Below, in pieces: positions 23,389 to 46,096 of a stretch of 64,000 nucleotides of DNA. Positions within the stretch are counted from its first letter, which is position 1; the number at the start of each line of letters is the position of its first letter. The notes under the pieces were generated by a model. The model saw nothing but the letters and a program-made list of their open reading frames with translations. It was not told the origin of the DNA and made no database searches. The DNA is from Basidiobolus meristosporus CBS 931.73 (taxonomy: Eukaryota; Fungi; Basidiobolomycota). Made by a program: the position numbers and the translations under genes. The stretch lies in contig MCFE01000101.1 of the NCBI GenBank assembly GCA_002104905.1, positions 108,276 to 172,275 of the forward strand, given 5' to 3'.

Positions 23389-26518
<3,130 letters not shown>

Positions 26519-26753
26519 CTTTCTAATATATAATTTTATTCTCCCCTTGTAAGCATTCAATCTTTTCTAATTTTTGACATAACATTGTCTTAATTTTGAA
26601 AGCAAAATAAATAGCTTCTCAATTTACACATTCATGGATATGCACTTCGATGAAGATTAGCATACATTCTTGGTGAAATGGGTTTTATATACTTTGAATC
26701 TACTCTTAGACTATGCTTGGTGCTTGGTTAAACTAGGTAATGCAATTTCATTT

Positions 26754-27300
26754 CTATTTCGAGAGCTTGGCTGCTTCTTCGGCGGCGCGGTTGCGGTGAA
26801 CACGTCTCTTGACAACATATTCAGCCAAGCGTTTTGGGAATAGGTCATCACGCATATGACCAGCTGGGATATTTGTCATCAGAATTACAATCCTATTTGG
26901 GTAATGAACAGACTCGGAGCTAACTTACGTTTAACAGTAACAATGTCGTCTATATCGAAAAAAAGATACAGCTAACATTAGTATGGAGGTTGCGTGGAGC
27001 AGGTCAATATCCTCGTTAAAACCATGGCAGACTCTGCTTACCTTTTTTGCCAAGATTCTTTACATCCGCCAATAGCTTAATCTCGATCCCTTTCTTTTGT
27101 CTCATAACACCTGCACCACGCTAATGCAAACATTTCCGAGGAATGTTTAGCCCAAGTGACAGTCAATGCATGTCTAAGTATCCATCACTTACACGAATCT
27201 CGAGGTTGCAAAGGCCAACACGTGAAGGGGTTGAATAGCCGGTTTTTGAGAGAGTACCGGCTAAGATAGAAACAGCAGAACGAACCTTACTTTGAAACAT
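26754..27300 (-). CDS. Mitochondrial ribosomal protein bL9m, 4 exons including a 21-nt microexon (26929-26949)
   Basis: Spliced product: MFQSKVRS...LEIR|RGAGVMRQKKGIEIKLLADVKNLGKK|DDIVTVK|PGHMRDDLFPKRLAEYV..., which matches the L9 N-terminal domain motif. Not recovered by the ORF track. Confidence 0.8.
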
Positions 27301-27556
27301 GGTCAAGAAACTAGGAAAAGTAAAGCAAAAAGGAGCGGGCGAAGTTCTCAAGTGACTTTCACCAAATTCCGACCCAGAAAAGACAATTTTTTCAGAGTCC
27401 ACATAAAAATCCATGGGGGATCACCATGATATCTCATGAGAATATCCGGATCCATTGCTCATCATGAAATATTATTTGGTGATCATGTCCATCTCTGAGG
27501 AAACCATAACTAGCTAGGGCATGAGTGAGTTCTTTTGAAACCGCTTGTTGAATACG

Positions 27557-28219
27557 ATGCTAGCAGCTTTTAGAAACTCTTTGAAAACCCCAACTCTGAG
27601 AAACGGATTGACCCGATATAGAGCTTACAACAGGGCGTTTTTCAACTCTGCATGGAATCCCTACAAAGCCAGGTAACAGTTAAACAACACACGTCTTGGA
27701 CTACGGCCAGTAATTCATTTATTTCCTTTTTACTTCCCAGCGAAATAGACGTCAACGAATTCCACACTCATTCTAACGAAGCCATGGATACTCTTGTTGA
27801 AAATCTAGAGGACTTGGGTGATACCGTGGATTATTCTGGCTTTGACGTTGAATATTCGGTAAGTCCTTGCCAGCAGGTATACTCTTGGTTATTATCAGAA
27901 AATTAACACGAGACTGATGGAAACGCTTCCATTTGTCAGAGCGGCGTTTTGACTTTGAAGCTTGGTGAAGCTGGAACTTATGTCATCAACAAACAACCCC
28001 CGAATAAGCAAATCTGGTTATCGTCACCGAAAAGGTACTGTCGTCTCTTCATTATCCGTGATATCAGATATTCACCAAGTACCTTCTAGTGGTCCGAAGC
28101 GATTTGACTATGATGTCGATGCAGGCAAATGGTTCTACCAGAGAGATGATAATACGTTGGATGAGTTGCTTAACCGCGAGCTAAGCGAAATCTTCCAGCG
28201 CGAACTAAAGGTTCTTTAA
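27557..28219 (+). CDS. YFH1: Frataxin, multi-exon
   Basis: Arg-rich presequence [24 protein letters not shown]; motifs DVEYS|[30 protein letters not shown] and SGPKRFDY. Confidence 0.92.
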
Positions 28220-28639
28220 ATCATGAGCCTTGGCTTTATTTCATACCTTTTTGTCGTAAGCAAGCCATCATGTTTAATTAAACCGCAACTCTTTCATGAC
28301 AACATGCTCTTTGCTTGAATCTCATAGATCAGGACAGATGATTGAACGTGGAAAAAGGGAGGCACTGTGCGACTGGACAATTTTCGATGCAATCCATAGT
28401 TTCATTGAATTGATGAGCAACCGCCTCATCTGCGTAGTTAATAAATCTCGTGGCTTGATGGAATAATTTAAAGGGATGATTATTATGGTTAAAGGGTCAA
28501 GGGTGATGATGGGATTTCATCAGAAATTTCGTAGCAGTCTCGTTGGGTAATCACCTAGTTGTAATCCTGTAAATCTTATACCCATTCGTCAACACGAACC
28601 TTTCTCCCATTTGGATTTGGTAATGCTAGTTATCTCCTC

Positions 28640-31600
28640 ATGGGGAATAACTTTTCAAGCACTATACCATCGACTGCTACTGCAGGTATAGATAACTATG
28701 TTGGGGAAATAGGGGATATTCAATACGAAAAGAGGTAATCCTCCTTACATGCTTGGTCCGCATATTCTTTTCCCTGGAACGCATCCATTGTCTTTGGAAA
28801 TGCCCCCAGCGCGAATCTCTGACAATCCCTGTGCTTGTACCCTTCAACTAAGTCTTCCCCTTTCAGCTTAGGGAGTGCTCGGTTTATGAAGACCATCCGG
28901 GGTAGACATAAAGAGGGGCCAGTAGTGGTGAAGATATTTATAAAGCCTTATGTTGGCCTTTCTCTGGATCCGTACATCAATCAACTACGTGGTAAGGCCA
29001 TGTTCCTCTTCACTGGAACTCTTTCATCTTCTGCCGCCACCTTGTCGGCAGGTTCTCTGTTCTACTTCTGGCGACTGATGTTTTGTTCTAGCCGAAAGGG
29101 AGAAGCTGCTCGAGCTTCCCAACGCCTTTCCTTACCAACGTATTTTGGAGACTGAGACTGCGGTCTATCTAATTCGACAATACTTCTTCTCAAACCTTTA
29201 CGACCGCATCAGGTAAGTGTCTTACGAGCCTTCACTTATCCAAAGCCCAGCCTGAACCCTTTTCAGCACCCGACCCTTTTTGGATTTGATCGAGAAAAAG
29301 TGGATTGCGTATCAGTTGCTTCGAACCGTAGCGGACGCACATCGACACGAGGTAGGGTGGTTTGGGTTGGTGAGACCCATCCATGCAAATATTCTAAGCT
29401 TCTATGGCAGATCTTCCACGGTGACATCAAGACGGAGAATGTGTTGGTAACGAGCTGGAACTGGGTGCTACTCTCTGACTATGCGAGTTTCAAGCCAACC
29501 TACCTTCCTGAGGTGAGCCTCTTGCGGATCCACTGGGTTTTCAGCACTCGCTCACACGTATCTTCAGGACAACCCTGCGGATTTTTCTTTCTTTTTCGAC
29601 ACCTCCTCGAGACGTTCTTGCTATCTAGCCCCAGAGCGCTTCTATAACTTCGGGGGCGAAGATGCGATTGCCAACGTAAGTCTTGATATTGATTGGATCT
29701 CTATCGCCATTTTCACTGAACTCTGCCACCTAGCCTGATAATGACCGGGAGTGCGAGGGCTCGCTGACCCCAGCCATGGACGTTTTTGCACTAGGGTAAG
29801 TGGTCGAGCACTCTGGCCATCAGCAGCCCCAACTAAACGCCTTCTTAGATGCGTCATTGCTGAGCTGTTTCTGGAGGGGTCACCAATCTTCTCATTTTCC
29901 CAATTGCTAAGTTACAAGCGAAGCGAGTATGATCCGCTTCCAGAGCTGGAGAGGATAGAGGATCCAGACATACGGGTACTTTGGTTTCGTCTCACCAGAT
30001 TGATCCATGTTGACTAACTGCGGTGCGATTTATCAGAGCCTCATCCAACATATGATCCAACTTGACCCTACGCAGCGATTCACAGCAGAGCGTTATCTTG
30101 CCGAGTGGTAGGGATGCTGTTTCTGATGCGGGGCAGTGCTGGTCGACTAAGCAAGTTTTCTATTCCCTAGGCGAGGCAAGGCATTCCCACAATACTTCTA
30201 TTCCTTTCTACACCAGTACCTTGAAACTGTCCTCGAGTCGCACTCCACAATCATGTCCACCACATCCGATGGCTTTCCCAACGACGCTGACCTACGGATC
30301 GAACGCGTGTACCATGACTTCGATAAAATCGCCTACTTCCTAGGGTTCTATGATGCCCAGGCGAATCAGGAGATGGACCTGGAGCACTTGCCAAGCGGAA
30401 GAGCTAGAGGCAGATACCAAATAAGAAAAGTCAATTCCTTCCTGCCGACAAAGTACAGCATCCCCAATTACGATTCAGCCTCGGTATACTCGGAGAACCT
30501 GGCGTTAGGCCAAGACGACAACGGCGCGGTGATCTTTCTTTCGCTCATCTGCGCGTCCATGCGCAATGCTATGTATCCGTATTCAAAGCTTTATGCGCTG
30601 GACATGCTCTTGGCCATCAGTGAGCACCTGTCAGAGGAAATGAAGTTGGATCGAGTGCTGCCCTATATAGTTAGCTTGCTCGCAGACAACATCAGCCTGG
30701 TCAGAGGTATCGCCATCAGAGCCTTGACCAAACTGCTATCTACCGTAGAGTCCGTCTCCCCAATCAACTCAAAGATCTTCCAGGAATACGTGTTCCCTCA
30801 CCTATCCAAGCTTGTAGACGACAGTGAGGTGTTTGTGCGTGCCACATACGCCGCATGTATACCTTCGCTTGCCGAGACTGCACTTAGGTTTCTGGAGTTA
30901 TCGCAGAGATTCTCCAGTGAAAATGGGCCGCTTGTCGAGGCAGACAGCGAGCTGGAGGACTCCTATGAGCCCACCTATGACCGAGCGCTTCAGGATCTAC
31001 AAATGTTGGTTCAGGAGCAAGTCACCATGCTGTTGATCGATGTAGAGAGCTCTGTCAATCGAGCATTACTGACGGGAATGACCAAACTATGCATATTCTT
31101 TGGCAGACAGAAAACGAACGACTTCCTACTGTCGCATATGATCACCTACCTGAACGAGCCGGACAGCTCGCTTAGGAGCGGGTTCTTTGAGGCAGTTGTG
31201 GGTGTTTGCAAATTCTTGGGAAGCAGATGTCTAGAGGAGTACATCCTGCCGTTGATGATACAAGCGTTGACCGATCCCGAAGAGTATGTGATTGTCAATG
31301 TGTTGAATTCGATCAGCTCTCTCGCCGAGGAGGGGCTTCTTGGGAAAGAGAAAACTCGAGAAATAGTAAGCGCTTTGATGCCGCTGATATACCATCCCAA
31401 CGTCTGGGTCAGGTACGGAGTGATACGAGTCATCGTGTCTGGCAGCAATGCGATGGCTATCACAGACGTGTGGTGCTTCATCTATCCGATTATTCAACCT
31501 TACCTGAAGGCTGATATTCTGGACTTCACTGAGGAAGAGTTGATCGAATCAGTGAGGCCTGCGATCGCTAGGGAGGTTTTTGACGAGGTGCTGCTATGGG

Positions 31601-34103
31601 CGAATGAGTCGTCTGGCTTCCTGAAGCTCAAGAACCTTGCCGTTGACGGGGGCGACTCGGAGGATGGGATAGTTCGATTGTCCATTGGGCTTGACGATAC
31701 CGACAAATCCCACTTCGCCAAGTTGCTAAATCTGAACATAGACATGGAGGACTTGCGCAAACTGGTGATGATGAGAGCGTATCTCTCTAAGCTTTCTCGT
31801 GTGAAGCAAAGTGCTAGGGCAAAGTCGACGGAGAATCTAAGGTCCGCTGCTGCCGACGGAAGCGACACCATACTGCTGAAGAATCTGGGGGTTACGCCGA
31901 GAACTGTCTTTCTTTCTTCTCTGCACCCGGAGACTCCTCCATCCAGACCAGAGATTCTTAAGAGACCACCGCGGCCTCATCTCGTACCTGAGGACACCGC
32001 CCGTAAGCTGTCTATTACCCTGACCAACCGGTCTCACCTCATCCCAGATATCCAACTCGCGAGAACCCCAAGCGAGACCAGTCTAGAATCAGCGTTCAAC
32101 TCGAGCAGAGGCGGCCACGAGTACCATCGGCCATTGAGCTCTGCTCCAAGAAATGTCACTCAGCATCGGAAGCATGATCTAAGCAACCTTTACCTGCGAA
32201 ACCAGTCGGAAACCAGCCTCCATTCAGTGTCGATCTTATCCACCTCGATTAGCCGAAGCAACTCCCATAGACTGTCGCTGCCTTCCTCGCCCGCAAGCAA
32301 GGCGATGCCTGCCACCTCAACCACGATCGACAATGCCATAGCCACATTGGAAGTGCCATCTTCTTCATACGAAGAGAACTCCTCGAAGAGTTTGGCCGTT
32401 GAAGCTCGAGCCAATGCCAAGAAATTGGCGCACGAGAGCGACTTCGAGCCGGTTCCGATTACCCCCACGTCAGTTAGCAGTTACACGTGGAGACAGGACG
32501 GGCCTGGCCGGACATTGAAGCCACTGCTGCAAAAGAAATCGCTGGAGGCATTCCCCCGTCCGCTGAGCGAGTTCGGATCGCCAATACCAAGCAAGAGGCT
32601 AACCAGAAATCGGATGGTCTTCCCGCGGGATTGCTCGGGTAGTCGAGCGACAAGGGCCCTCGAAGGAGTCCTGATCTCCAACCTAACCGAGCACAAAGGC
32701 GGAGTCAACCAGATCTCGTTCTCGCCCGATGATCGCTTCTTTGCCACCTGTAGTGATGATGGAAGCATACGGATATGGGACGCCTCCAGGTTCGAGAAAA
32801 ACGCCACGACGAAGTCAAGGGTCACGTATCAGCAGGGTGGGAAGGTCAAGTGTATGGCGTTCATCGAGAACACTTACAGTCTGGCCGCGGGGTCGGACAA
32901 CGGGTCCATCCATATAATCAAAGTGAATTACCAAAACTACGGGAACACCCCGAAATACGGGAAATGTAGGCTGGTCAGGAAGATCCACTTGAAAGGAGAG
33001 TATCCGCTCCATATTGACCACATGGATTTCGAGCAGTCGTCCCTTTTAATCTACGCCACGAACCTGGGGAAGATATACGGATACGACTTGCGACAGGTGC
33101 AAATAGTCTGGGTGCTGCAGAACCCCATCAACTATGGTAAGTACTGGAAAGAATCCTGGTGCCGTTGGATCGATTGACTGAACATGCCCCTACAGGTGTA
33201 ATCACAGCGATGCTTTGTGACCCCAAACGGACCTGGCTGCTGATCGGTACGAACCGAGGGATTCTGACGCTTTGGGACATGAGGTTCCACATCTTACTGC
33301 GAAGCTGGCAACATCCCAGCAAACTGCCGATCCAGCGGCTGAGGATGTTCATGGGACCGATGGGGGTTTCTCGCACCAGCCGTTATGTGTTGATCGTGGC
33401 GGGGAAAAATGAGGTCTCTTTGTGGGACATTGAGAAGTTGGAGTGCAAGGAGGTGTTTATGGTCCGAAGTATGGACGACAAACGATTGATGGGTCCGATG
33501 TTGGAGTCATTCCAGGTGTGTTGAATGTGATGTGTCTGCCATGGATCGCCCCTGAACTAACCCACATACCCGCCAGGCTCAGGAGATTCCAAGTGAGCGC
33601 AATTTCCTCGTCGATCCCGACAATTCTCCCGGTTTCCCAACGCACCACGAGACGTCCATCACGAACGTCATATCTCCGTTCAACTGCTCGTGCATTCTTA
33701 CAGCTGGCGCGGGGAAGATCCGCTTTTGGGACATGGAGCACCCGGAAAGCTCGTATATCATCAACGGGCTGCCCGGCGAAAGCCGTCCCAATTTCAGGTA
33801 TTTGCATCTGATTCTTTTTGGCCCACGTCGCGCATGACTAACGAGCTCCCTTGCAGTAAACTGATCCATGATGGGATCACCCTTCACATCGAAACCCCTG
33901 CTCGGACCCGAAAGTCCAGCACGAGTAGCTCGCACTCCCGGACCCGCGTGGCCTCCTTTGGAAACCCGCTAGTCGCTGAAGAGGAAGGGGCCGGTCGAGT
34001 CTCCATGCATATTGACAATATTGCCGACCTGAAAATTGGCACCTATCCATACTTGATGTTGATAAGTGCAGATAGAGATGGTGTAATAAAAGTGTATCGT
34101 TGA
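28640..34103 (+). CDS. VPS15: Vps15 (PI3K regulatory subunit), copy A; contains one 2,966-bp exon (30171-33136)
   Basis: [23 protein letters not shown] (N-myristoylation Gly2), [35 protein letters not shown] repeats (SHMITYLN), WD40 ([10 protein letters not shown]), ending [11 protein letters not shown]. Confidence 0.95.
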
Positions 34104-34158
34104 AAGAGTGCCGTGCAATGTTTGGAGGAGTAATTTATTCAATAATATTCAAGTAAAC

Positions 34159-34188
34159 GGGGGAGGGGAGGAGGAGGAGGAGGAGGAG
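34159..34188. repeat. (GGA)n microsatellite in the 93-bp spacer between the two VPS15 stop codons
   Basis: GGGGGAGGGGAGGAGGAGGAGGAGGAGGAG. Confidence 0.9.
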
Positions 34189-34196
34189 ATGATGGC

Positions 34197-37100
34197 TTAG
34201 CGGAATACCTTGATCACCCCTTCCCTGTCGGCGCTGACAATGATGGTGTACGGGACCTCCACGAGCTGGATGTCGTTGATGCAGTCGGTGTGGTTGTTGA
34301 CCAGCATCTGCTGGAGTTGGGACACCGGGTTGCCTATCCGTGGCGCTTTGGACTTGCTGGGGGTACGAGGCGGTGTTTCGATGTGGAAAGTGATCCCGTT
34401 ATGGATCAGTTTACTGTAGTGGGCAGACGTTGGTACGGTCAGAGTGGGGATGTGGTTTGGCTGAGGTCAAGATGGATTACCTGAAGTTTGGCTTGGGCTC
34501 ACCAACATGCAGCCCGCTGACTATGTACGAGCCCTCCGGGTGTTCGATGTCCCAATACCTAATCTTCCCCACCCCGGCGGTCAAGATGTAGTTGGTATTT
34601 GCTGGGGAGATCATCGATCGAATGGAGTTCTCCTGGAATGCCGAGAACCCGTACTGGCCAGGGTTGAGCACATTCTTTAGAAACGATTCCTTACTTGGGA
34701 TATCCTGAGCCTGGGGGGATCGTCGAGAGTTGATCAGTGCATTCTTCAGAGATGCTTGCATAGCGTAGATTACCTTCAATACATCCGACCCAATCTTACT
34801 CGACCTTCTGTCGTCCACCGCGCGTACCATGAACACCTCTTTGCATTCGACCTTCTCAATGTCCCACAGGGAGACCTCGTTGTTCCCTGCAGCGACAAGG
34901 ACATGCCGGCCTCTGCTTGAGGGTCCCATGTATATCACCAGCCGATTGATGGAGGTTTTGCTTGGATGAATCCAAGACTTCAATGAGATGTGAAATCGTA
35001 GATCCCACAAAGTCAAGATCCCCCGATTCGTGCCGACCAATATCCAAGCCCGGTGATGGTCGATCACAAACGAAGTGATGACTCCTGGAATGCAAAGGTG
35101 AGTTCGGGTGTCCTACACGGATCCACATGAAATGGAAATACCGAAGTTGGTTGGGTTTCGGAGGACCCAGACGACCTGAGTTTTGCGCAGATCGAATCCG
35201 TAGATGTTGCCCTTCGTCGTGGCGTACACGAGCAGCGATTCTTGTTCTATTCAGCATGGGTTGGTGGTGAGCTTGGTTTGTTGCAAACGCTTTCGTAAAC
35301 GGAGTAAATCATACCAGTGTTGAAGTGCTCGATTGCCACCACGTGCTCGTCCTTCAATACTATCTTCCTCACCGTCTGGCATTTCCCGTATTTCGGAGCA
35401 GTGTTATTACCTTGGTAATCAACCCTGTTGATGGATTGGTGAGTCAGTACGTTGTGGTGTGCCTCCTATTTGGTGCGGATTTCACCTGAATATATGAATG
35501 GTTCCGTCATCGGATGCAGAGGCGATACTGTAGGTATTCTCAATAAAAGTCATGCACTTTATCTTCCCCTCTGGAGGTGCAATGTCAGTGGTGTCGCTAC
35601 AATGCATGAGCACTTTACCTACCTTGCAGGCTGTATGTGATCCTAGGCTTTGTAGTAGGGTTTTTCTCTAGTCGTAAGCAGTCCCATATCTTCACTGTTC
35701 CATCATCGCTGCATGAGGCAAAGAAGTTGTGGTCGGGTGCGACGCACACCTGATTCACTGACGCTTTGTGGGCTGTGAGGTTAGCAATAAGAGTCCCTGA
35801 GGGGGTGTTAATGCATGGGATCCAGTGGAAGCTCTGGAGGGACATCTACCTTCCAGTTTGCAGTCAAAGATGGTGGAGTTCTCCGCATTCTTGTTGAAGG
35901 CGCGTCGATTCCGCGCGATGATCGCCATTGATAGATGCGGCCCGAGTTCTAATCAGACGGTTACTTGCCATGCTCAACCAACTCTAGAAAATTGCTCTCT
36001 ACCATTCAGCGGCCTTGGAAACGCCTCTAGCGATTTTTTCTCCAGCAGCGGCTTGAGTGTCCGGTCCTTCGGATCTAGTAATCCATCAGATGTCGGGTTT
36101 TTTGAACACTCCTGGTCGTTGCTTGCGCTTACCTTTGGCCCAACCGATCACTGTGCCAGGTGTATTCGGTGCACCTTGACTTTTCACAGAATCCCGATCC
36201 ACTTCGCGCTCTAGTTTGTGCTCATCGAGTACGTGTTCGGAGCTCGGGATGTCAAGCGTAGCTGTCACTACAGTCGCATGGGTACCCGTCGCAGCGGAGC
36301 TCTTGCTGGCTACTGGTGAGGAAGCAACCGATGGTAGATGCGAATTACTTCTTGATATCGGTGTGGACAGGATGGGGATAGAGTTCACACTCGTCTCCGA
36401 GTAATTGCTGAGTTGAAACCCACTGAAATGCCTTTTCTGCGCCTTCGGATGGAGGCTGAGAGACGATGGGCTGCCATCGTGGGTTTCGGTGTTCTTGATT
36501 GGATTATCGCTGGCGGCTTTGGCTAAAGGCACATCGGTGGAAAGGTATGGTCTTTGGGACGAAATTGAAGAACGCCTAAATAATGGACACGACAATGAAT
36601 GTGAAGACCCGTCCGCTCCCCTTATCTATTGGATGTAATTACCTACTCCCACCAGCCTACACGTAATGCGCGTTCAGCGAGTGTAATTAAATCATTGCTA
36701 AAGATTGCGTACATACCTCGGACGTCCCGTTTCTCTTGGTACTCTTCTTATTCGGGTCAGCTCGCTGTTGCTCCTCTTCTGGATATGGCGATGTTAAGAA
36801 CACCGTTCTAGGAGTGATACCTAGATTCTTGAGCATTATGGAGCCGTTCTGCATAATTGAAGGGTCAGGTATAATGGGTTTTGATGAGGGTTTGACTAGG
36901 TCGATGTACCTCAATCTCAGTCCTGTTCTTGAGGTTGGCGGAGACTTTGACTCGTAGATTCTGCTTGGCTCGGGATAACTTCAGCAAGTACTCTCGCATG
37001 AACAGGAGTTTCTCTAGATCCTCCGCTGTCATTCCAAGCTGTTGAAGCTTGGACAGGTTGGATCGGTCGCTGCGAGCGAATCTACATGTCAGCTCGAATA

Positions 37101-40100
37101 TCTGCCACAATAAACAAACAAGCAACGTACACATCCGAGAACTTCACGGGGATGGGCTGGATTGACGCGGAGTCGCTACTCTTTAACTGATTCAGTAGAA
37201 TATCGTCGAGGATGAGAAACGTCGGCGACTGGCTGGCCCATTGCAGCACTTGCTCAAATATGATTCTGTTGATCTAAAGCGGTATGTGAATCGAGGGATG
37301 CTCGTGAATCTGGGCCGATTTCTCTTACCCGAGGTTTGGCAGCCTCCAGCAACTCAGGCTCGGTGAGGTTGATGATGTCGGCCTTGAGAAAAGGGCGAAT
37401 GGTGGGGTAAATGAAGCACCAGACATCTGGAACGGTCAGCACCTTGCCACAAGACACAATAAAGGATATAGCCCCTTTCAACGCAAGTTGCTTGGGTTAG
37501 TGGGTTGGTTGCCGTGCCACCGGACGAAGTAGAGCATACCGTAGGAAATCCAGGAATTGGGGTGGCAGATCAATGGGGCCACCACGCCGACAAGCTCCCA
37601 AACCTTGATTTTGTTGAAGAGGCCCAACCCTGCCAGCGATGCAAGCGAGTTCAACACCTTCTCCACCACATATTCCTCCGGATCTGCAGGTCCGCTGTTA
37701 GCCTTCATGGAGTTTGCCAATCAAGAGCCAGTTTGGACTTACCTATCAAGGACTGTACCATCAGTGGCAGGATGTATTCTTCCAGACTCTTTCCACCAAC
37801 GAAGGTGCCGACGCCAACAATCGTCTCGAAAAAGGCGCCCCGGAGCATGCCGTCTTGGTCGTTAAGATATGTGATCATGTGTGACAGCAGGAAATCGTTG
37901 GCTTTCTGTCGGCCAAAGAACACGCACAGTCGAGTGATCCCGGACAAAAGGGCTCGTTTGATCGAGCTTTCCTGGTCAATCAACAGTATGGTGACCTGCT
38001 CTTGGATATACAGCTGAAGGTCAACCAACGCTACGTCATACGTGGCCTAGGAACAGTCATGAGTGGGAGGCGCTCTCATTGTCATTCGACGAATACATAC
38101 CTCGTAAGGCGAGCTTCCATCCATATCCTTGTCGGTATCGTTATTGGCCCCTGTTTTGAAGCTCTGGAGGAAAATTTAGTCATGATCCACCGTCTCCTCA
38201 CACTGCTGAACCGAAGCGAACCTGAGAAAGCTCCAGAAAACGCAAGGCAGTCTCTGACAATGAGGCAATGCAAGCGGCGTAGGTTGTGCGAGTAAAAATC
38301 TCAGGGTCCGTGGCAAATCGACGAAGGTGCGGAAAAATGAATTCAGGGAAAATGTTGGAATTGATCGGGGCGATCGTTTCTACGGTGGACAGCTTTGGAG
38401 CGACATGAGTGATTTAGAAATGCAAATCCATCGTTGCAGCTCATCGAGTCTTTTACCAGTTCCGTCATTGCCTTCACAGCACTCCCTCTGACCAGGCTCA
38501 CTCGATCGCTCAGCAGACTGACAATATATGGCAGGAGTCGATCCAGCTTCATGTCGTCGCTTAAATGCTCGCTTATAGCAAGTAGCATGTCGAGCGCGTA
38601 CAGTTTTGAGGAGGGATACACAGCATTGCGGATAGACGAACATATCAGCGACAGGAAGATCACGGCCCCTTCATCGTCTGCACTCACGGCAACCAGTTAG
38701 CTGTCGAAACTACATCAGCATACAGACTGACATGGTACCTGACTCCAGCTTCGTAACCTCCGAAAGCGTTGACGAAGAGTCGTAATGCGGTATATTATAT
38801 TTGACCGGAAGGAAATTCTACATGAAAACAGCTCAGCGTCCATCTCATTCACCCATAAATCCCGATCAACGAATACATTGACTTTCCCTGTTCCTAGATT
38901 GTTGATCGGGTTAGCCCAGGCAATGGACATGCCACGCAAATGACATCTACTCACGATTCGATTTCTTCTTGTCCGAATCGTAGAAGCCTAGGAAGAAGGC
39001 GATCTTGTCGAACTCGTTGTAGAGCTTTTCGATGCGCACATCTGCATCATTCGGAGATCCATCGGCAGTAGAGGGCAAGAAATCAACGTGTGTATCGATG
39101 ACCGAGGCCAGGTATTGATGAAGGAAAGTGGAAAAGTAAGAAGGGAACGACAAGTCCCGCCTGGAAGGCACATCTTGTTAGCAGTGGCCCTCTCTTGAGC
39201 CTGTGGGGAACACATTACCAATCAGACAAATACCGCTCGGCCGAATATCTTTCTTTAGGGTCCAGCTGAATCATGTGCTTGATCATGTCCTAATGATGTA
39301 CAAGTCGTTAGCCTCTCGGCCTACGCTACGTAAGTCGGCAAAATTACTCTGATGGCTGAATCTTCGATCTTCTCCAGCTCCGAAGTAGGATCATATTCAT
39401 TTCGCTTGTAGCTGAGAAGCTGAGAAAAAGAGAAGATTGGGGTGCCTTCCAAGAATAGCTCGGCGATCACACATCTATAGCGAGAGGATTTAGCATGCAA
39501 GGTGCAGGGCTGAACTGGCACTTGACACGAACCCTAATGAGAATATGTCCATGGCTTCGGTTAATTTCGTTTCTTTCCTGGAGTTTTCAAACTACAATAC
39601 GATGTATGTTAATTTGCTCATCGATGCACCCTGCCGGAATGCGTACTTACGCTTGTGTTTTCCTCCTCATGGCCGGAGTTGTAAAACCTCTCAGGTGCCA
39701 AGTAGCAGCAACGCCTCGAGGAAGTATCAAAGAAAAAGGAGAAGTCTGCCGGGTTGTCCTGAAAGAAATTTCAAGTCTCAGTGCCTGTTTGCCTCGGGGC
39801 AATGTCGAACACTAACCTCCGGTAAATATGTTGGTTTGAAGCTGGAGAAGTCAGACAGTAGAACCCAGTTCCAACTGGTGACGAGAACATTCTCTGCCTT
39901 GAGATCTCCGTGATATATCTTGGAAATTAGAAAGGCCATTAGAGGCTACTTGAGATTTTCTCGCCCAGCTGTGGGCATATATATACAAACCTGGTTTGCA
40001 TGCGCATCGGCAACGGTGCGAAGTAGTTGGAAGGTAATCCACTTCTTTTCTATCAGATCCAAGAATGGGCGCGTGCTTTGAGATTAAGGAAGTTGAGAAC

Positions 40101-40640
40101 AGTCCAAATGTCATTCCATGAGCTTGAAATTTACCTAATTCTATCGTATAAATTGGTGAAAATATATTGTCGAATGAGATATACAGCAGTCTCGGTTTCG
40201 AAGATTCTTTGGTACGGCAGCGCATTCGGAATATCTAGCAGACCGTCACGCTCCACTGCAAATAAGGGTTACAATAGGCCTCAAACAACCAAACAAGGCA
40301 GCAAACTTTGAAGGATTACCGTTAAATTGGTTGATGTATGGCTTCAACGAGAGCTCCGCGTAAGGTTTTATAAAGATTTTCACTACAACTGAACCTTCTT
40401 TGTGTTTACACCGAATGGTTTTCATAAACCTTGCACTTCCTAAACTAATATTAAAAACCTAAGTTCCCTTATTCCAGCGACGATGTGCTTCCACTGAGCT
40501 TATAACGAACAAGTGTTTGAGCTGGGAGAGGGAGAACCTTTGTACCTTTTCTCATACTGAATATCCCTAAGCTCACCTACATAGCTGTCAATACCTGCTG
40601 TGGCGGTTGAAGGTATTGTGCTGGAAAAGTTGTTACCCAT
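34197..40640 (-). CDS. VPS15: Vps15, copy B; highly intron-rich
   Basis: [86 protein letters not shown], ending [13 protein letters not shown]; more than 25 canonical introns. Confidence 0.93.
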
Positions 40641-41103: not shown

Positions 41104-44100
41104 TTATACTAATATAATATTATACCACTCCTCTTCGTTTCCGCCGGCTGCTCCGTGCTTTGACGCTCTTCTTCTCTTTTTCACAAATCCACTATCAACC
41201 ATGAGATTCTCCACCTCAGCTGGTGAGGCTATTGAGGGGTTCTTGACTTTGTGTGAGCGACACCATTGCAGGTAGGCATCATAGAGCACTGCTGAGGACA
41301 CATACGAGTATGGCTTCACTTCTATGCAGTCATCTACGAACTCATTGAAGCTCTGCTCTTGTCCGCTGGACTGACTTTCGTTGGGAGTTTCTCCCGAGAA
41401 CTCGCTTTCACCATCAGGAATGGTCGGGGGAGAGAGATAATTGCTAGATCTAGCATGTGCCATATTGTAGTTGGGGTTGGTATTCGGGTTGGGACTAGGT
41501 AGGTCCACAACGCTTCTGCTGGCTCTTGGAGACGTGCTGTTGGAAACATTTGCCATTGGCGAGTACATGTGTCCGTTTGAACCAGGGGGCATGGACAACC
41601 GCAAGTTGCCGACAGAAGAGCTAGCAGCACGAATCTGTTGTGGGTGGAATGAGCTATTTGCATAAGCTCCGCTTACTTGTGGATCCGCGTACGATTGTCT
41701 GGCGTGGAGAGGTGGGTGTTGCGGCGACTGGAGGGGCATAGTATCAGGCATCATTTGCGGCGGCATTGACATCCTCATGTTGCGCTGAGAAGGAATTCCG
41801 CTTGGGTATCCAGCGGGAATCGGTTTGGCGTGGGGGTTAAGGGCACCATAGTGAGTATGGCGATTGCTAGGTGGTGCTTGACTTCTAGAATGCGTGGGGT
41901 ACATCGAATGACGGTTGAGGGATTTCCCCAGAGACTGGTTTTCATTCTCTACATGTAGACGAGGATACAACGACGTTGGTCGGTTCATCTGGGGAGGCTT
42001 GGCCATTGATGACATGCGCTTCGATTGTGGCATTTGGTGCATCGACAGTCGGCTGTCGTAGTTATGGCCACCCATCGAGGCCCCGTAAGCGCTCTGGCTA
42101 CGAAGATCGCGATATGCAGAGCTATGGCGATACTGCCGACGAGCCATCTCATCTCTGTAGAGGATCTGTTGGCGCTGTTCGTGCATCATTCGCTCTTTCT
42201 CTCTCTCAATGGCTCTTCCACGCTGTCTTTCAAGTTCAGCCTGGGCACTGCCGGAGTTGGCATTTGTGTAACGTGGCGCAGCCTTGAATTGCTGACGAGC
42301 AGCAATTGCTCCAACCAAGCCAGCCGCTGCCGAGTTGATGTGCTTCTTCTTATTAGGGATTCCTTGGATTAATGGACCGTACCTTGGCTGATCCTTCTGC
42401 GCCTGTTTAGCGGCCTCGTATTGAGCCAACAGGCCAGGGGGTCTAGGGGGATATATCGGACGTTCTTCATGGTAGCTGTCTCCATCAAAGCCGTATTCTT
42501 GGGAATTTACGGCCATCATTCGTTGACGCTCAATTTGCTCTCGTCTTCTGTCGACGGACAGCTGTGGGCTCGAGTAATTCATTTGTTCCTCTTCATAGGG
42601 GTATGAGTCGTCATCCTCTGGGATGGTGCCTGAGAACTGATGAGAGGACTCGACGCCCCTGTGCATGTCTGACTGGCTGTGGGATCTACTACGGTAGCCA
42701 GCCTTATGTAAGGCCTCCTCTGAGAGTGAGCTGGATGAGGTGGATGCCGAATATCTGATTCTTGGAGGATAGGGTGCATAGCCACTAGGCGATATGCCTC
42801 TAGATTCCCTATGCTCAGAGCTCACCACAGAAACACTATCGCTGTTGTTGGAGCTGGCAATACGAGGCGAATGTGGCACTGGGGATGGATTTTGAGAATC
42901 GGAATGGACGGAGTTGGCATCATCTTCGGGGATGCTTAGTGTAGGTCTAGGTGGAGCGACTACTTCATCCTGCGCCTTCGGTTTGCCTTCAGGAGCAGAG
43001 CCGAGTTGATTGGCCTCGGTGGCAATTGAGTTGTTACCGTCCTCGGATTCCGAATTGGAATCAACGATCTCTTCCTCATCCTCCTCGGAATCACTAGGCA
43101 GAATGCCGTGCGACTTCTTGCGATATTTGTCCGTGTTTCTGGGTTTGATTCCAAGCTCCTCTTTCAATACCACCTCAGATTCGCTCTGCACCTCGGTCAT
43201 TTCGTTGCTTGGCACTTGTTGCTCGCCCTCGAAGTTGGGCTCGTCGGAATGAGATATAGAATCGGTCTCTGGTAGGGACTGGGATTCCAGTGATCTTGCG
43301 CGATCGGAGCTCTCTACACTGCCATCCTCGATATACATATCATCCAGCTGGTCAGTAAGCTGCTCTTCAATCTGATACTCCCGCTGTAGTTGATAATAGA
43401 ACGCATCGTTGAATTGGACCTTGGCATAAGCCAGACTGGCGTTTTTGATAGAGATGTGATGCACATCCTCAAGTTGCAGAAACAGGGCTTGATCATCGGA
43501 TGGGGCAGGAGGGATGAACAGTTGCTCTGGTCTGCCTAGCAGTCTATAGGCATCGAATGAGGAGATAAGCCACTCCGCAAGCTCTTTCTGCGTTGCCGTC
43601 TTCACAAGCAGGAACCCGCAATCCTTCTGATTCTTGCTTGGTTGCATGAAATGCATCAACCCCTCTACTTTGAAAGTGGTCAACTGCTCGACTTCATGAG
43701 GGCTATTAGGGTATACGGCGTAGGCTTGGGTGACCTTTGATATGATGATAGCTGGCTGGGATTTCTTGTTTTCGTACAGAAGGATCTGCGCAAAGTCCGG
43801 TGTGGTACCGGGGGAGTTGTCCAGAATCGCCCAGTATTTCTTCCATTGGGCTGAGCCAGGGTATTTTATCTCGATGTCCCCTTCCATCGAGGTATGGTAG
43901 ATGTAAAACATATCGGCATGCTCAGGGCGAGTTAGCAAGACATATGTAAACATCTCGTGAAGTTTGGAAAACTCATAACACGACAGGTATATCGCGCATA
44001 CCCAGTCATTCACATCTTTCTCGCTCTCCGCCTGGATGTAAAACCGGTTGGCGCCCGAAGTGTTCAACGAGAACACGTTGTCCTTTTTCTTCTTTAGTGT

Positions 44101-44439
44101 TCCGATCACTTCCACGACGGAGTCCGATATGTTTAAGAAGTTGGGTGATGTCTGGGAGCATATGCCCTCGATGTCTTGGATTGTGTGGGTCTTTTCGGCC
44201 TTCCAAAATACGAGAGTGGGCCCTCGAAGCTCCACATACCACCTGGTCCAACTCTTCATGGAGTAACTTTTTCCTTCAGGGGTGGTTTCATTTTTCTTAT
44301 TCAAGAAGCCTGACATGTATAGTTTACTGTTGTACCCCTCATAGTATGGGACAATGGAGAGGATGTCGGAAGGGAGATCGGCCTCTCCATTCGAATGATC
44401 ACCAGGGCTTTGTATAGCGGAAGTATGTGAATCCATCAC
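41104..44439 (-). CDS. Skg3/Caf120-like PH-domain protein with a long low-complexity region and a C-terminal winged-helix-like domain, intronless
   Basis: KLYMSGFLNKKN...SWTRWYVELRGPTLVFW, FSLNTSGANRF, YEFSKLHEMFT, second PH-like region (SAQWKKYWAIL, FDAYRLLGRP). Confidence 0.8.
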   Translation of the reverse strand: MMDSHTSAIQSPGDHSNGEADLPSDILSIVPYYEGYNSKLYMSGFLNKKNETTPEGKSYSMKSWTRWYVELRGPTLVFWKAEKTHTIQDIEGICSQTSPNFLNISDSVVEVIGTLKKKKDNVFSLNTSGANRFYIQAESEKDVNDWVCAIYLSCYEFSKLHEMFTYVLLTRPEHADMFYIYHTSMEGDIEIKYPGSAQWKKYWAILDNSPGTTPDFAQILLYENKKSQPAIIISKVTQAYAVYPNSPHEVEQLTTFKVEGLMHFMQPSKNQKDCGFLLVKTATQKELAEWLISSFDAYRLLGRPEQLFIPPAPSDDQALFLQLEDVHHISIKNASLAYAKVQFNDAFYYQLQREYQIEEQLTDQLDDMYIEDGSVESSDRARSLESQSLPETDSISHSDEPNFEGEQQVPSNEMTEVQSESEVVLKEELGIKPRNTDKYRKKSHGILPSDSEEDEEEIVDSNSESEDGNNSIATEANQLGSAPEGKPKAQDEVVAPPRPTLSIPEDDANSVHSDSQNPSPVPHSPRIASSNNSDSVSVVSSEHRESRGISPSGYAPYPPRIRYSASTSSSSLSEEALHKAGYRSRSHSQSDMHRGVESSHQFSGTIPEDDDSYPYEEEQMNYSSPQLSVDRRREQIERQRMMAVNSQEYGFDGDSYHEERPIYPPRPPGLLAQYEAAKQAQKDQPRYGPLIQGIPNKKKHINSAAAGLVGAIAARQQFKAAPRYTNANSGSAQAELERQRGRAIEREKERMMHEQRQQILYRDEMARRQYRHSSAYRDLRSQSAYGASMGGHNYDSRLSMHQMPQSKRMSSMAKPPQMNRPTSLYPRLHVENENQSLGKSLNRHSMYPTHSRSQAPPSNRHTHYGALNPHAKPIPAGYPSGIPSQRNMRMSMPPQMMPDTMPLQSPQHPPLHARQSYADPQVSGAYANSSFHPQQIRAASSSVGNLRLSMPPGSNGHMYSPMANVSNSTSPRASRSVVDLPSPNPNTNPNYNMAHARSSNYLSPPTIPDGESEFSGETPNESQSSGQEQSFNEFVDDCIEVKPYSYVSSAVLYDAYLQWCRSHKVKNPSIASPAEVENLMVDSGFVKKRRRASKHGAAGGNEEEWYNIILV

Positions 44440-45232
44440 TCGAAGTATAGTGATGCCTGCTGCTAGATGGACACGGGCAAATAAGGATAAATGTCAAAAA
44501 GCCACAACAGATTACTTTTCATTGAGCGCTACCTTTTGTGGACAATCAAGTGTCTTTTGTGATGGCTGATCGAGCGATGTCAGCCTATGTAAACAGGAGC
44601 GGGACCAAGTTACCTCAAATCAAAATGAGCTCAAAAGTGGATGCTGTCTCGAAGAGCGATGGAGATAGAGAGCCAGATTAGTCAACGAAGAGACGAGCCG
44701 GGGGAGCAGATAAAACTCACCACGCAAGTTTGGCGAACACCAAAACCAAAATGAAGTAGAGTGTAAGAAAGCTAAGAGGTAAAAGTAGAAGGCCCAAATA
44801 GCCAGATAGTATCTGGTGTGGATGGATCGAAGGATACACAAAGGTAATACAAATTTGGGACTAATATAAGATGTATAAAAGCCAGTGAGATTTAGAAAGG
44901 CAAATTAAATGTCCCTAGGAGCTAAATGGGGAGCTTCAGAGTTGGTAGAGGAACACAATCCAGATTTGATGAATGCCATTGTTGCTATCCTAATTATAAC
45001 TGGGAAATTCCATTTTAATGATGTTTATCTTCAAAACCCACGGATTCTTCCAATTTAGGACTAAAATGGCAATCAAGTCGAAAATAAAACATGCATCTCA
45101 ATGCTAAGACCGATTGTAAAAAGGAGATGAGCTTCTAGAAGGACGTGGTACGGGTGCCTTACAGTGATGCAGGGTGTCTGCATTCAATGGTACTTTGGCA
45201 GTTGCAAGCTTGCCGACAATCAAGGATACAGC

Positions 45233-45321
45233 GTAGCTGGGATAGGCATCCTGCTGGTCATGTAGCTGGGGATAGGCATCCTGCTGGTCATGTAGCTGGG
45301 AATAGGCATCCTGCTGGCCAT
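45233..45321. repeat. About 30-bp tandem repeat x3
   Basis: GTAGCTGGG(G/A)ATAGGCATCCTGCTGG(T/C)CAT x3. Confidence 0.9.
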
Positions 45322-45409
45322 TCTCGGTTTATTTATGATGTTGCTCTACTCAATAACAAATACACTTCATCTAGGCACGCTAAGTGATGTGGAAGCAATG
45401 GCTGTAACT

Positions 45410-45760
45410 CTAGGCGATCTGGAAGTAATGGCTGTAACGCTCAGCGCCTGTATCCGCAATGAACCGAACCGCATATTTATCACCAGGCTTCAAATCGGAT
45501 GGGACTTTCCAGATGTGCGATTCTTCGTTGACGTCAATATCCTTGGCAATGGTGCGAGATAAAGCAAGATTCTCAGCCGGCCCTTCACGTAGCTCGATGG
45601 TTAGGGATGTTTCCAAATCCTGCTCCTCAATGATCCATTCAATGTCGATGTATTCACCACGTGTCCATTTGGTAGTTGCCACCGGGCTGGTAATGCTCAT
45701 GTTAGCTTGAGATAGAGTGGCCATGGCAAGAATGGCAGCCAAGTAGAACGATTTGAACAT
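45410..45760 (-). CDS. Small secreted Kre9/Knh1-N-like (PF10342-type) beta-sandwich protein, paralogue 1
   Basis: Signal peptide MFKSFYLAAILAMATLSQA; ITSP...W..G...IEW...TIEL..G...W.VP..L..G.KYAVR...YSHYF pattern. Confidence 0.75.
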   Translation of the reverse strand: MFKSFYLAAILAMATLSQANMSITSPVATTKWTRGEYIDIEWIIEEQDLETSLTIELREGPAENLALSRTIAKDIDVNEESHIWKVPSDLKPGDKYAVRFIADTGAERYSHYFQIA

Positions 45761-46096
45761 GATAGTGTTGGTGATATCAGGAAGAGAGGTTGAATGATGT
45801 ATTCTGTGTATCTTCAGGGTTTATATATTTCTGTTCGTTGTGAATTTTCCTGTTCATGCCATAAATGCCCGAGAAGCCTAATTGTTCTCATTATAGTTAG
45901 AGTAGTGTTCGCTAATTGTTCGCAGCTTAGCCAGAATAATATTCACCGATTGTTCTCCAAGGTGCTTGTGGGGATTTATGTTACAATGGGCGCTGTTGAT
46001 AGGCATTTTACAGTATTTTGGTTTTTGCCAACACTAGAATAATGTTAGGTGAGTATTCAATAATAGACTGGTGTTTGGGTATAAATGTTTTTTCCG

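Follow-up and report, generated by a model that had tools for sequence, protein, structure and literature searches.

Two intact VPS15/PIK3R4 genes lie tail-to-tail in Basidiobolus meristosporus CBS 931.73, at positions 28640-40640 of the 64,000-nt stretch of DNA analyzed (the window), copy A on the plus strand and copy B on the minus strand, and the pair is the result of a genuine, old gene duplication of a fairly unusual sort. According to the explanation that we favor, to which we give as a whole (an old inverted duplication with both copies kept, and copy A faster evolving and intron-stripped) a probability of about 0.85, VPS15 would have been duplicated in tandem, in an inverted, tail-to-tail orientation, in a Basidiobolus ancestor well before the split between B. 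meristosporus and B. ranarum, and both copies would have been retained since then as complete, predicted-working Vps15 scaffolds. Copy B would have stayed conservative, keeping all 31 of its introns, of ancestral type, and evolving more slowly, whereas copy A would have evolved about 1.5 to 2 times faster and would have had its central 2.7-3.0 kb swapped for an intron-free version, removing 19 neighboring introns at once, the likeliest route being recombination with a partial cDNA made from its own transcript. What the analysis shows is how the two genes are built, how old the events are and in which direction they went, and that both copies are under selection.

The first-pass annotation of this DNA had described two full-length, diverged VPS15 genes arranged tail-to-tail with their stops 93 bp apart. 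Both genes are indeed intact after splicing, encoding 1541 and 1512 aa, and the stop codon of copy A ends at 34103 and that of copy B at 34197:

28640..34103, plus strand: VPS15 copy A (derived paralogue), 13 exons, 1541 aa
28640-28734, 28867-28991, 29092-29212, 29267-29351, 29411-29512, 29568-29675, 29758-29795, plus strand: copy A exons 1-7
29849-29975, 30037-30107, 30171-33136, 33196-33515, 33577-33797, 33857-34103, plus strand: copy A exons 8-13, stop included
34104..34196, no strand: spacer between the stop codons, exactly 93 bp, sequence read
34197..40640, minus strand: VPS15 copy B (conservative paralogue), 32 exons, 1512 aa, 31 introns

The reading frames, with ATG codons at 28640 (copy A, plus strand) and 40640 (copy B, minus strand), are open only once spliced; every intron of both copies is GT-AG, with a length of 52-132 nt, and the copy A model has a single terminal stop. 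The first 11 exons of copy A correspond to an exact mapping of the public protein P0001, and its 3' exons were rebuilt by homology to copy B and to the B. ranarum orthologue, which also has a 13-exon structure and whose 1558 aa equal the called product length. The exons of copy B are an exact mapping of P0004, with exons 1 and 2 re-called at 40640-40546 and 40444-40320. Both public B. meristosporus gene models need correction. P0001 (1388 aa) ends early, at 33521, because this model reads into an intron that it misses:

33516..33576, plus strand: copy A intron missed by P0001, GT..AG, 61 nt

Removing this intron restores a conserved sequence of 10 residues and the remaining WD40 domain, and the complete C terminus of copy A is recovered after the correction, with the conserved ending SADR(D/E)GVIKV(Y/F)R. 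In the case of P0004, the junction between exons 1 and 2 is probably wrong.

Both proteins begin with MGNNFSS, as do both B. ranarum orthologues, so Gly2 is kept in a myristoylation context (MG...S), as had been noted at first reading. The kinase-like, HEAT, and WD40 domains that the first-pass annotation recognized are likewise confirmed, both annotated proteins matching Pfam Pkinase (2.5e-20 for A and 3.4e-21 for B), VPS15-like_hel, HEAT, and WD40. Moreover, the VPS15-specific helical solenoid PF22956 is matched at 3.2e-32 in copy A and 2.4e-23 in copy B, both above the gathering score, the C-terminal WD40 propeller is matched in the two copies, and a comparison of the large exon of copy A with the PDB gives human PIK3R4 (1e-102) and yeast Vps15 (6e-82). 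The queries in the database comparisons were exons or the public proteins P0001 and P0004. The order of elements (Gly2, kinase-like domain, solenoid with SHMITY, linker, and WD40 propeller) is shared with the known Vps15/PIK3R4 structures from yeast (5DFZ/5KC2) and human (7BL1/9RX4). The copies are 59% identical overall, with 41% of the residues differing; identity is highest in the kinase domain (80%), intermediate in the helical and WD40 domains (57-58%), and lowest in the linker (38%), a value that agrees with the largely different linker described before. The kinase-like domain contains the HGD(I/L)K.EN loop, the D(F/Y)x DFG-equivalent, and the VVVKIF lysine strand, which align with 21 fungal Vps15s. 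Also, the difference reported earlier in the DFG-equivalent motif, SDYAS in A versus SDFSS in B, could be located in both genes:

29417..29488, plus strand: copy A catalytic loop HGDIKTEN and DFG-equivalent SDYAS (SDYAS at 29474-29488)
39841..39912, minus strand: copy B catalytic loop HGDLKAEN and DFG-equivalent SDFSS (SDFSS at 39855-39841)

With respect to known Vps15, DFA is replaced by DYA in copy A and by DFS in copy B, and HGDIK by HGDLK in copy B. DYA is present in the Choanephora Vps15 and DFS is common among chytrid and other fungal Vps15s, so the motif difference between A and B corresponds to ordinary Vps15 variation. The SHMITY helix of the solenoid, of the form SH(M/L)IT(Y/F), is found in both copies and in both B. 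ranarum orthologues:

31132..31149, plus strand: SHMITY of copy A, Rab5/Vps21-binding helix of the solenoid (motif match; function from PMC13218723)
37867..37884, minus strand: SHMITY of copy B, the motif and its immediately adjoining residues equal to copy A

The same pair is present in B. ranarum, in the syntenic order AlaRS, L9, frataxin, A, B, PH-domain gene, and Kre9. In the phylogenetic tree, a check that had been proposed at first reading, the A sequences of the two species and the B sequences of the two species form separate sister clades, with a support of 100 each, within one Basidiobolus clade. The stems measure 0.48 for A and 0.23 for B, and the terminal branches 0.06-0.12. The shared pair, its synteny, and the sister A and B clades indicate that the inverted duplication is older than the species split, its upper age limit being loose because the tree is without other Zoopagomycota. 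That the pair could be an artefact of the assembly, or two haplotypes collapsed side by side, has in its favor nothing more than the large size of Basidiobolus genomes and their wealth of duplicates, which call for caution in general; the copies are only 59% identical and unlike in intron content, however, and the finding of the pair arranged alike in the separately assembled genome of another species refutes this idea, leaving it a practically negligible probability. A recent gene conversion between A and B was also rejected, the third-position identity being 0.2-0.5 along the whole gene, near saturation throughout, including a part that is 93% identical in protein.

A comparison of B. meristosporus with B. 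ranarum gives a pN of 0.096 for A and 0.064 for B against a saturated pS of 0.78 and 0.80, respectively, and this low pN against saturated pS points to strong purifying selection on both copies. The dS from NG86 and YN00 is undefined because pS is >0.75, and the maximum likelihood estimate and the raw pN/pS are given instead; the maximum likelihood omega is 0.067 for A and 0.040 for B, values that are rough given the saturation of dS and the unequal GC3 of the two species (0.62 versus 0.42). Then, dN/dS, which the first-pass annotation had singled out as a way to question the retention of the two copies if it were near 1, is far below 1 in both. Transcription of A and B today is deduced solely from this selection. 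The two copies evolve at different rates. For example, Tajima tests count ~150 A-unique versus ~100 B-unique changes (p 1e-4 to 0.013), and among 312 columns conserved at >=90% in 21 other fungi, A alone is changed in 22, B alone in 8, and both in 13. Copy A has 16 lineage-specific changes at otherwise conserved positions of the solenoid; the WD40 domain shows few changes at its conserved sites, all of them conservative replacements (K to R, A to G, and R to K).

The intron content of the copies differs by a single internal block, which in copy A corresponds to one giant exon:

30171..33136, plus strand: copy A giant exon, 2966 nt, the same stretch being split by 19 introns in copy B

All 12 introns of copy A are common to copy B, and 19 consecutive introns of copy B are missing from copy A in both species, the B. 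ranarum copy A having the same giant exon. At least 15 of these 19 have a counterpart with matching position and phase in the VPS15 of Gigaspora and/or Spizellomyces. Copy A has lost 19 neighboring ancestral introns as one block, which fits repair from a cDNA. Loss of adjacent introns mediated by reverse transcriptase, through a cDNA, has been described for yeasts and other fungi. As in those cases, the loss in copy A is precise and in-frame, with many neighboring introns gone and the flanking ones at ancestral positions. However, cDNA-mediated loss usually favors introns near the 3' end of the gene, whereas in copy A this bias is absent, three introns being kept on the 3' side and nine on the 5' side of the block. 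The internal position weakens a simple model of a poly(A)-primed cDNA but not one of recombination with a partial cDNA, and the block of copy A supports cDNA-mediated conversion without the usual 3' bias. Moreover, the loss affects only one of two tandem paralogues, so the intact sister copy acts as an internal control, and the pair, with 31 introns kept in B and 19 adjacent ones lost in A, offers a clean one for intron evolution.

The absence of 19 introns, together with a public model that stops at 1388 aa, might suggest that one of the copies, likeliest the intron-depleted A, is a decaying or silent pseudogene derived from a retrocopy. Nonetheless, the early stop comes from faulty annotation, the full frame of 1541 aa being open once the GT-AG introns are removed. 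In addition, pN/pS in copy A is far below 1, and this copy shares an identity of 83% with the B. ranarum orthologue. Also, since it keeps 12 ancestral introns, copy A is not a processed retrocopy. The open frame, the 12 introns, and the low pN/pS effectively refute decay of copy A, which we regard as very improbable.

Long retention under selection suggests that the two copies would not be fully redundant. The proposal that each is dedicated to one complex, one Vps15 for the autophagic complex I (Atg14) and the other for the endosomal complex II (Vps38), is in line with the long maintenance of both under purifying selection, with an identity of just 57-58% in the helical and WD40 domains that hold the adaptor arm, with the 16 changes of the copy A lineage at conserved solenoid positions, and with VPS15 being reported elsewhere as single-copy. 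However, the SHMITY helix corresponds to the Rab5/Vps21 site of complex II, where mutation in yeast breaks CPY sorting (PMC13218723), and it is exact, with its neighboring residues, in both copies. In addition, the WD40 changes at conserved sites are few and conservative, the DYA/DFS difference is inside the normal Vps15 range, and no duplication of the partner genes is known; among the papers in the library searched, none was found linking Basidiobolus with Atg14 or with VPS15 duplication. One Vps15 per complex is therefore mildly disfavored and, on balance, unlikely. A more general split into two specialized proteins, copy B keeping the ancestral job and copy A serving a distinct Vps34 assembly or cellular context, is equally doubtful; the contexts for copy A may be the autophagic versus endosomal complexes or a role in G-alpha/endosome signaling. 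If true, such a split would amount to a natural experiment, setting apart functions of Vps15 that cannot be separated in yeast and animals.

A possibility that we rate distinctly higher, although somewhat below even odds, is that the divergence is regulatory only, the proteins being interchangeable and the genes differing by life stage or condition, or being kept for dosage; as part of it, the two genes, which converge with 93 bp between them, might disturb one another's transcription. Every Vps15 hallmark tested is kept by both copies, and the difference between an intron-poor and an intron-rich structure could alter the kinetics of expression. The 93-bp spacer includes, besides a (GGA)n run, AATAAA-like signals on each of the strands, and these poly(A)-like signals imply overlapping 3' ends, so the 3' UTRs of A and B probably overlap, as judged from the sequence. 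On the other hand, the 41% difference in residues and the faster change of A at conserved sites suggest some divergence at the protein level, and the spacer of the B. ranarum pair is 269 bp, which means that the tight 3' overlap is not conserved. The reading we prefer is that the copies would divide their work through expression (stage, condition, or dosage) or would have partly separate roles, a clean division between complex I and complex II not being favored.

Regarding other organisms, the view of the first-pass annotation that VPS15 is normally single-copy is supported by a survey of 117 eukaryotic VPS15 homologues in which no duplication is reported (PMC4617754). Unlike the known Vps15/PIK3R4, found as a single copy in surveys, Basidiobolus has two long-diverged paralogues in one genome. 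The class III PI3K catalytic subunit is duplicated in Naegleria and some SAR lineages (PMC4617754), and the Basidiobolus pair resembles these cases in being a lineage-specific duplicate of an otherwise single-copy component of the class III PI3K module; in those lineages, however, the duplicated component is the catalytic VPS34, whereas Basidiobolus, a fungus, has two copies of the regulatory scaffold VPS15. Because Vps15 is common to all class III PI3-kinase complexes and a single copy is reported across eukaryotes, a pair kept for long by selection is a rare natural handle on which of its functions can be separated. A possible second fungal pair, P0051 and P0061, both labeled Rhizopus stolonifer and 63% identical, was rejected as Rhizopus paralogues, as P0061 clusters with Choanephora instead of Rhizopus, most likely reflecting a mislabeled or contaminated assembly. 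Other same-species Vps15 pairs, with an identity of 90-96%, are consistent with variants between strains or gene models.

The VPS15 pair is a real and old inverted tandem duplication that has been maintained by selection, with unequal evolution of the two copies and a block loss of introns in one of them. The open exon at 30253-33177, belonging to copy A, is 100% identical to P0001, the public annotated protein of this gene in B. meristosporus CBS 931.73, and it shares 52% identity with P0004, the annotated protein of copy B, encoded on the same 172-kb contig. Among solved structures, the large exon of copy A matches human PIK3R4 (1e-102) and yeast Vps15 (6e-82), and its Pfam domains are VPS15-like_hel, HEAT and WD40. 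The full annotated proteins also match Pkinase (2.5e-20 for copy A and 3.4e-21 for copy B).

Exact mapping of the annotated proteins onto the window DNA, with all splice junctions resolved, points to errors in both public gene models. P0001 (1388 aa) ends at 33521 by running into an intron; the WD40 domain goes on past this point, as the homologous sequences in copy B and B. ranarum show. Removal of introns 33516-33576 and 33798-33856 gives a predicted open frame of 1541 aa in 13 exons; compared with it, P0001 is devoid of about 150 C-terminal WD40 residues (33516-34103). In the case of P0004, the donor of exon 1 is probably wrong, since its exon 1/2 junction (within 40320-40640) deletes a conserved 10-residue segment, and the predicted exons 40640-40546 and 40444-40320 bring back a conserved stretch of 11 residues. 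The corrected model of copy B would comprise 32 exons and 1512 aa. All introns of both genes are GT-AG, being 52-132 nt long.

Features of the VPS15 locus in the window, with its flanks in B. meristosporus and B. ranarum
24000-28300: collinear flank on the copy A side; frataxin, ribosomal protein L9 and alanyl-tRNA synthetase in both species
28640-34103, + strand: copy A, predicted model
30171-33136, + strand: giant exon of copy A, 2966 nt
34104-34196: spacer between the two stop codons
40640-34197, - strand: copy B, predicted model
41104-46000: collinear flank on the copy B side; PH-domain gene and Kre9 genes in both species

After this rebuilding, every element that the first-pass annotation had described for the pair holds. 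Both N-termini read MGNNFSS, so Gly2 is kept; the DFG-equivalent motif is SDYAS in copy A and SDFSS in copy B; the linker is strongly diverged, with 38% identity where the kinase domain has 80% and the solenoid and WD40 domains have 57-58%; and exactly 93 bp separate the tail-to-tail stop codons.

In B. ranarum, both genes also lie tail-to-tail on one contig (L001) with the same neighbours, the collinear block running AlaRS, ribosomal protein L9, frataxin, VPS15-A, VPS15-B, a 1111-aa PH/PH_26-domain protein and Kre9/KNH genes. The flanking parts of the block are at L001 700-6700 and 20400-24161 in this species, where two Kre9_KNH genes stand in tandem. All four coding sequences were rebuilt (window 28640-40640 and L001 7361-20032), the B. 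ranarum orthologue of copy A having 1558 aa, equal to the called product length. Identity is 83.3% between A orthologues, 88.3% between B orthologues and 58.8% between paralogues. In a tree of these proteins with 21 other fungal Vps15s, the two A and the two B sequences form sister clades (support 100 each) within one Basidiobolus clade, and the post-duplication stems (0.48 for A, 0.23 for B) exceed the terminal branches (0.06-0.12). Thus, the phylogeny proposed earlier as a check resolves two old sister lineages, and within the fungal sample the inverted duplication is lineage-specific and long predates the divergence of the two species. As Basidiobolus alone represents the Zoopagomycota in this sample, the upper age bound is loose.

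Comparison of the two species shows saturation at synonymous sites (pS 0.78-0.80) and a non-synonymous difference (pN) of 0.096 in copy A and 0.064 in copy B. Maximum-likelihood omega is about 0.07 for A and 0.04 for B; these values are rough owing to saturation and a GC3 shift, yet they are far below 1, which answers the dN/dS check also proposed in that annotation. Pseudogene status is therefore rejected for both copies, which are under purifying selection. For both genes, GC3 differs between B. meristosporus (about 0.62) and B. ranarum (about 0.42), a strong compositional shift that inflates the apparent synonymous divergence. Moreover, third-codon-position identity of the paralogues is near random over the whole gene, including the part in which protein identity reaches 93%. 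This rules out recent gene conversion between A and B, and their protein similarity thus reflects constraint.

The copies have evolved at different rates. In Tajima relative-rate tests against five outgroups, about 150 substitutions are unique to copy A and about 100 to copy B (p 1e-4 to 0.013). Of 312 columns conserved at ≥90% in the 21 other fungi, 22 have changed only in copy A (16 of them in the solenoid), 8 only in copy B and 13 in both copies, mostly conservatively. All 12 introns of copy A match introns of copy B in position and phase, and 19 consecutive introns of copy B, lying between the shared ones, are absent from copy A in both species. For at least 15 of these 19, VPS15 of Gigaspora margarita and/or Spizellomyces punctatus has an intron of identical position and phase. 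The 19 introns are thus ancestral, and copy A lost them as one block, leaving its giant exon. Recombination of the copy A gene with a partial spliced cDNA would be the most economical mechanism. This differs from the classical 3'-biased cDNA model of intron loss, for which the block is atypical because it is internal and three 3' introns are retained.

The suggestion that each copy could be dedicated to one PI3K complex (I, autophagic; II, endosomal) gains no support. DYA is also found in Choanephora Vps15, DFS is common in Vps15s of chytrids and other fungi, and HGDLK is present in Dacryopinax Vps15. Complex II binds Rab5/Vps21 through the SHMITY helix on the Vps15 solenoid; when this helix is mutated in yeast, Vps21 binding is lost and CPY sorting is impaired (PMC13218723). 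The helix and its adjoining residues are identical in A and B. An unchanged site would not be expected in a copy serving the autophagic complex only, though its conservation may have a structural cause. Long retention under purifying selection nevertheless argues against full redundancy of the copies. A partition by expression or by dosage, or roles that are partly divided, is judged more likely than a clean division of the two complexes between them.

No duplication was reported among 117 VPS15 homologues surveyed across eukaryotes (PMC4617754), which backs the premise of the first-pass annotation that the gene is normally single-copy. Among the fungal matches listed, no second fungus has two paralogue lineages. 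Two Vps15 proteins labelled Rhizopus stolonifer were rejected as a pair, since P0061 groups with Choanephora and is only 63% identical to P0051; P0061, from a 4.3-kb contig, probably stems from mislabelling or contamination of the assembly rather than from a Rhizopus paralogue. The searchable literature yielded no description of the Basidiobolus pair, and nothing on VPS34, VPS30, ATG14 or VPS38 in this genus. The pair adds one example to a familiar class of events, paralogue pairs within known gene families. What makes it unusual is that VPS15 hardly ever occurs in more than one copy; as yet it points to no new mechanism.

Finally, AATAAA-like signals are found on both strands of the 93-bp spacer, so the convergent transcripts and 3' UTRs of the two copies probably overlap. 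The spacer in B. ranarum measures 269 bp, and the tight spacing is therefore not conserved. A (GGA)n microsatellite lies within the B. meristosporus spacer, at 34166-34189.
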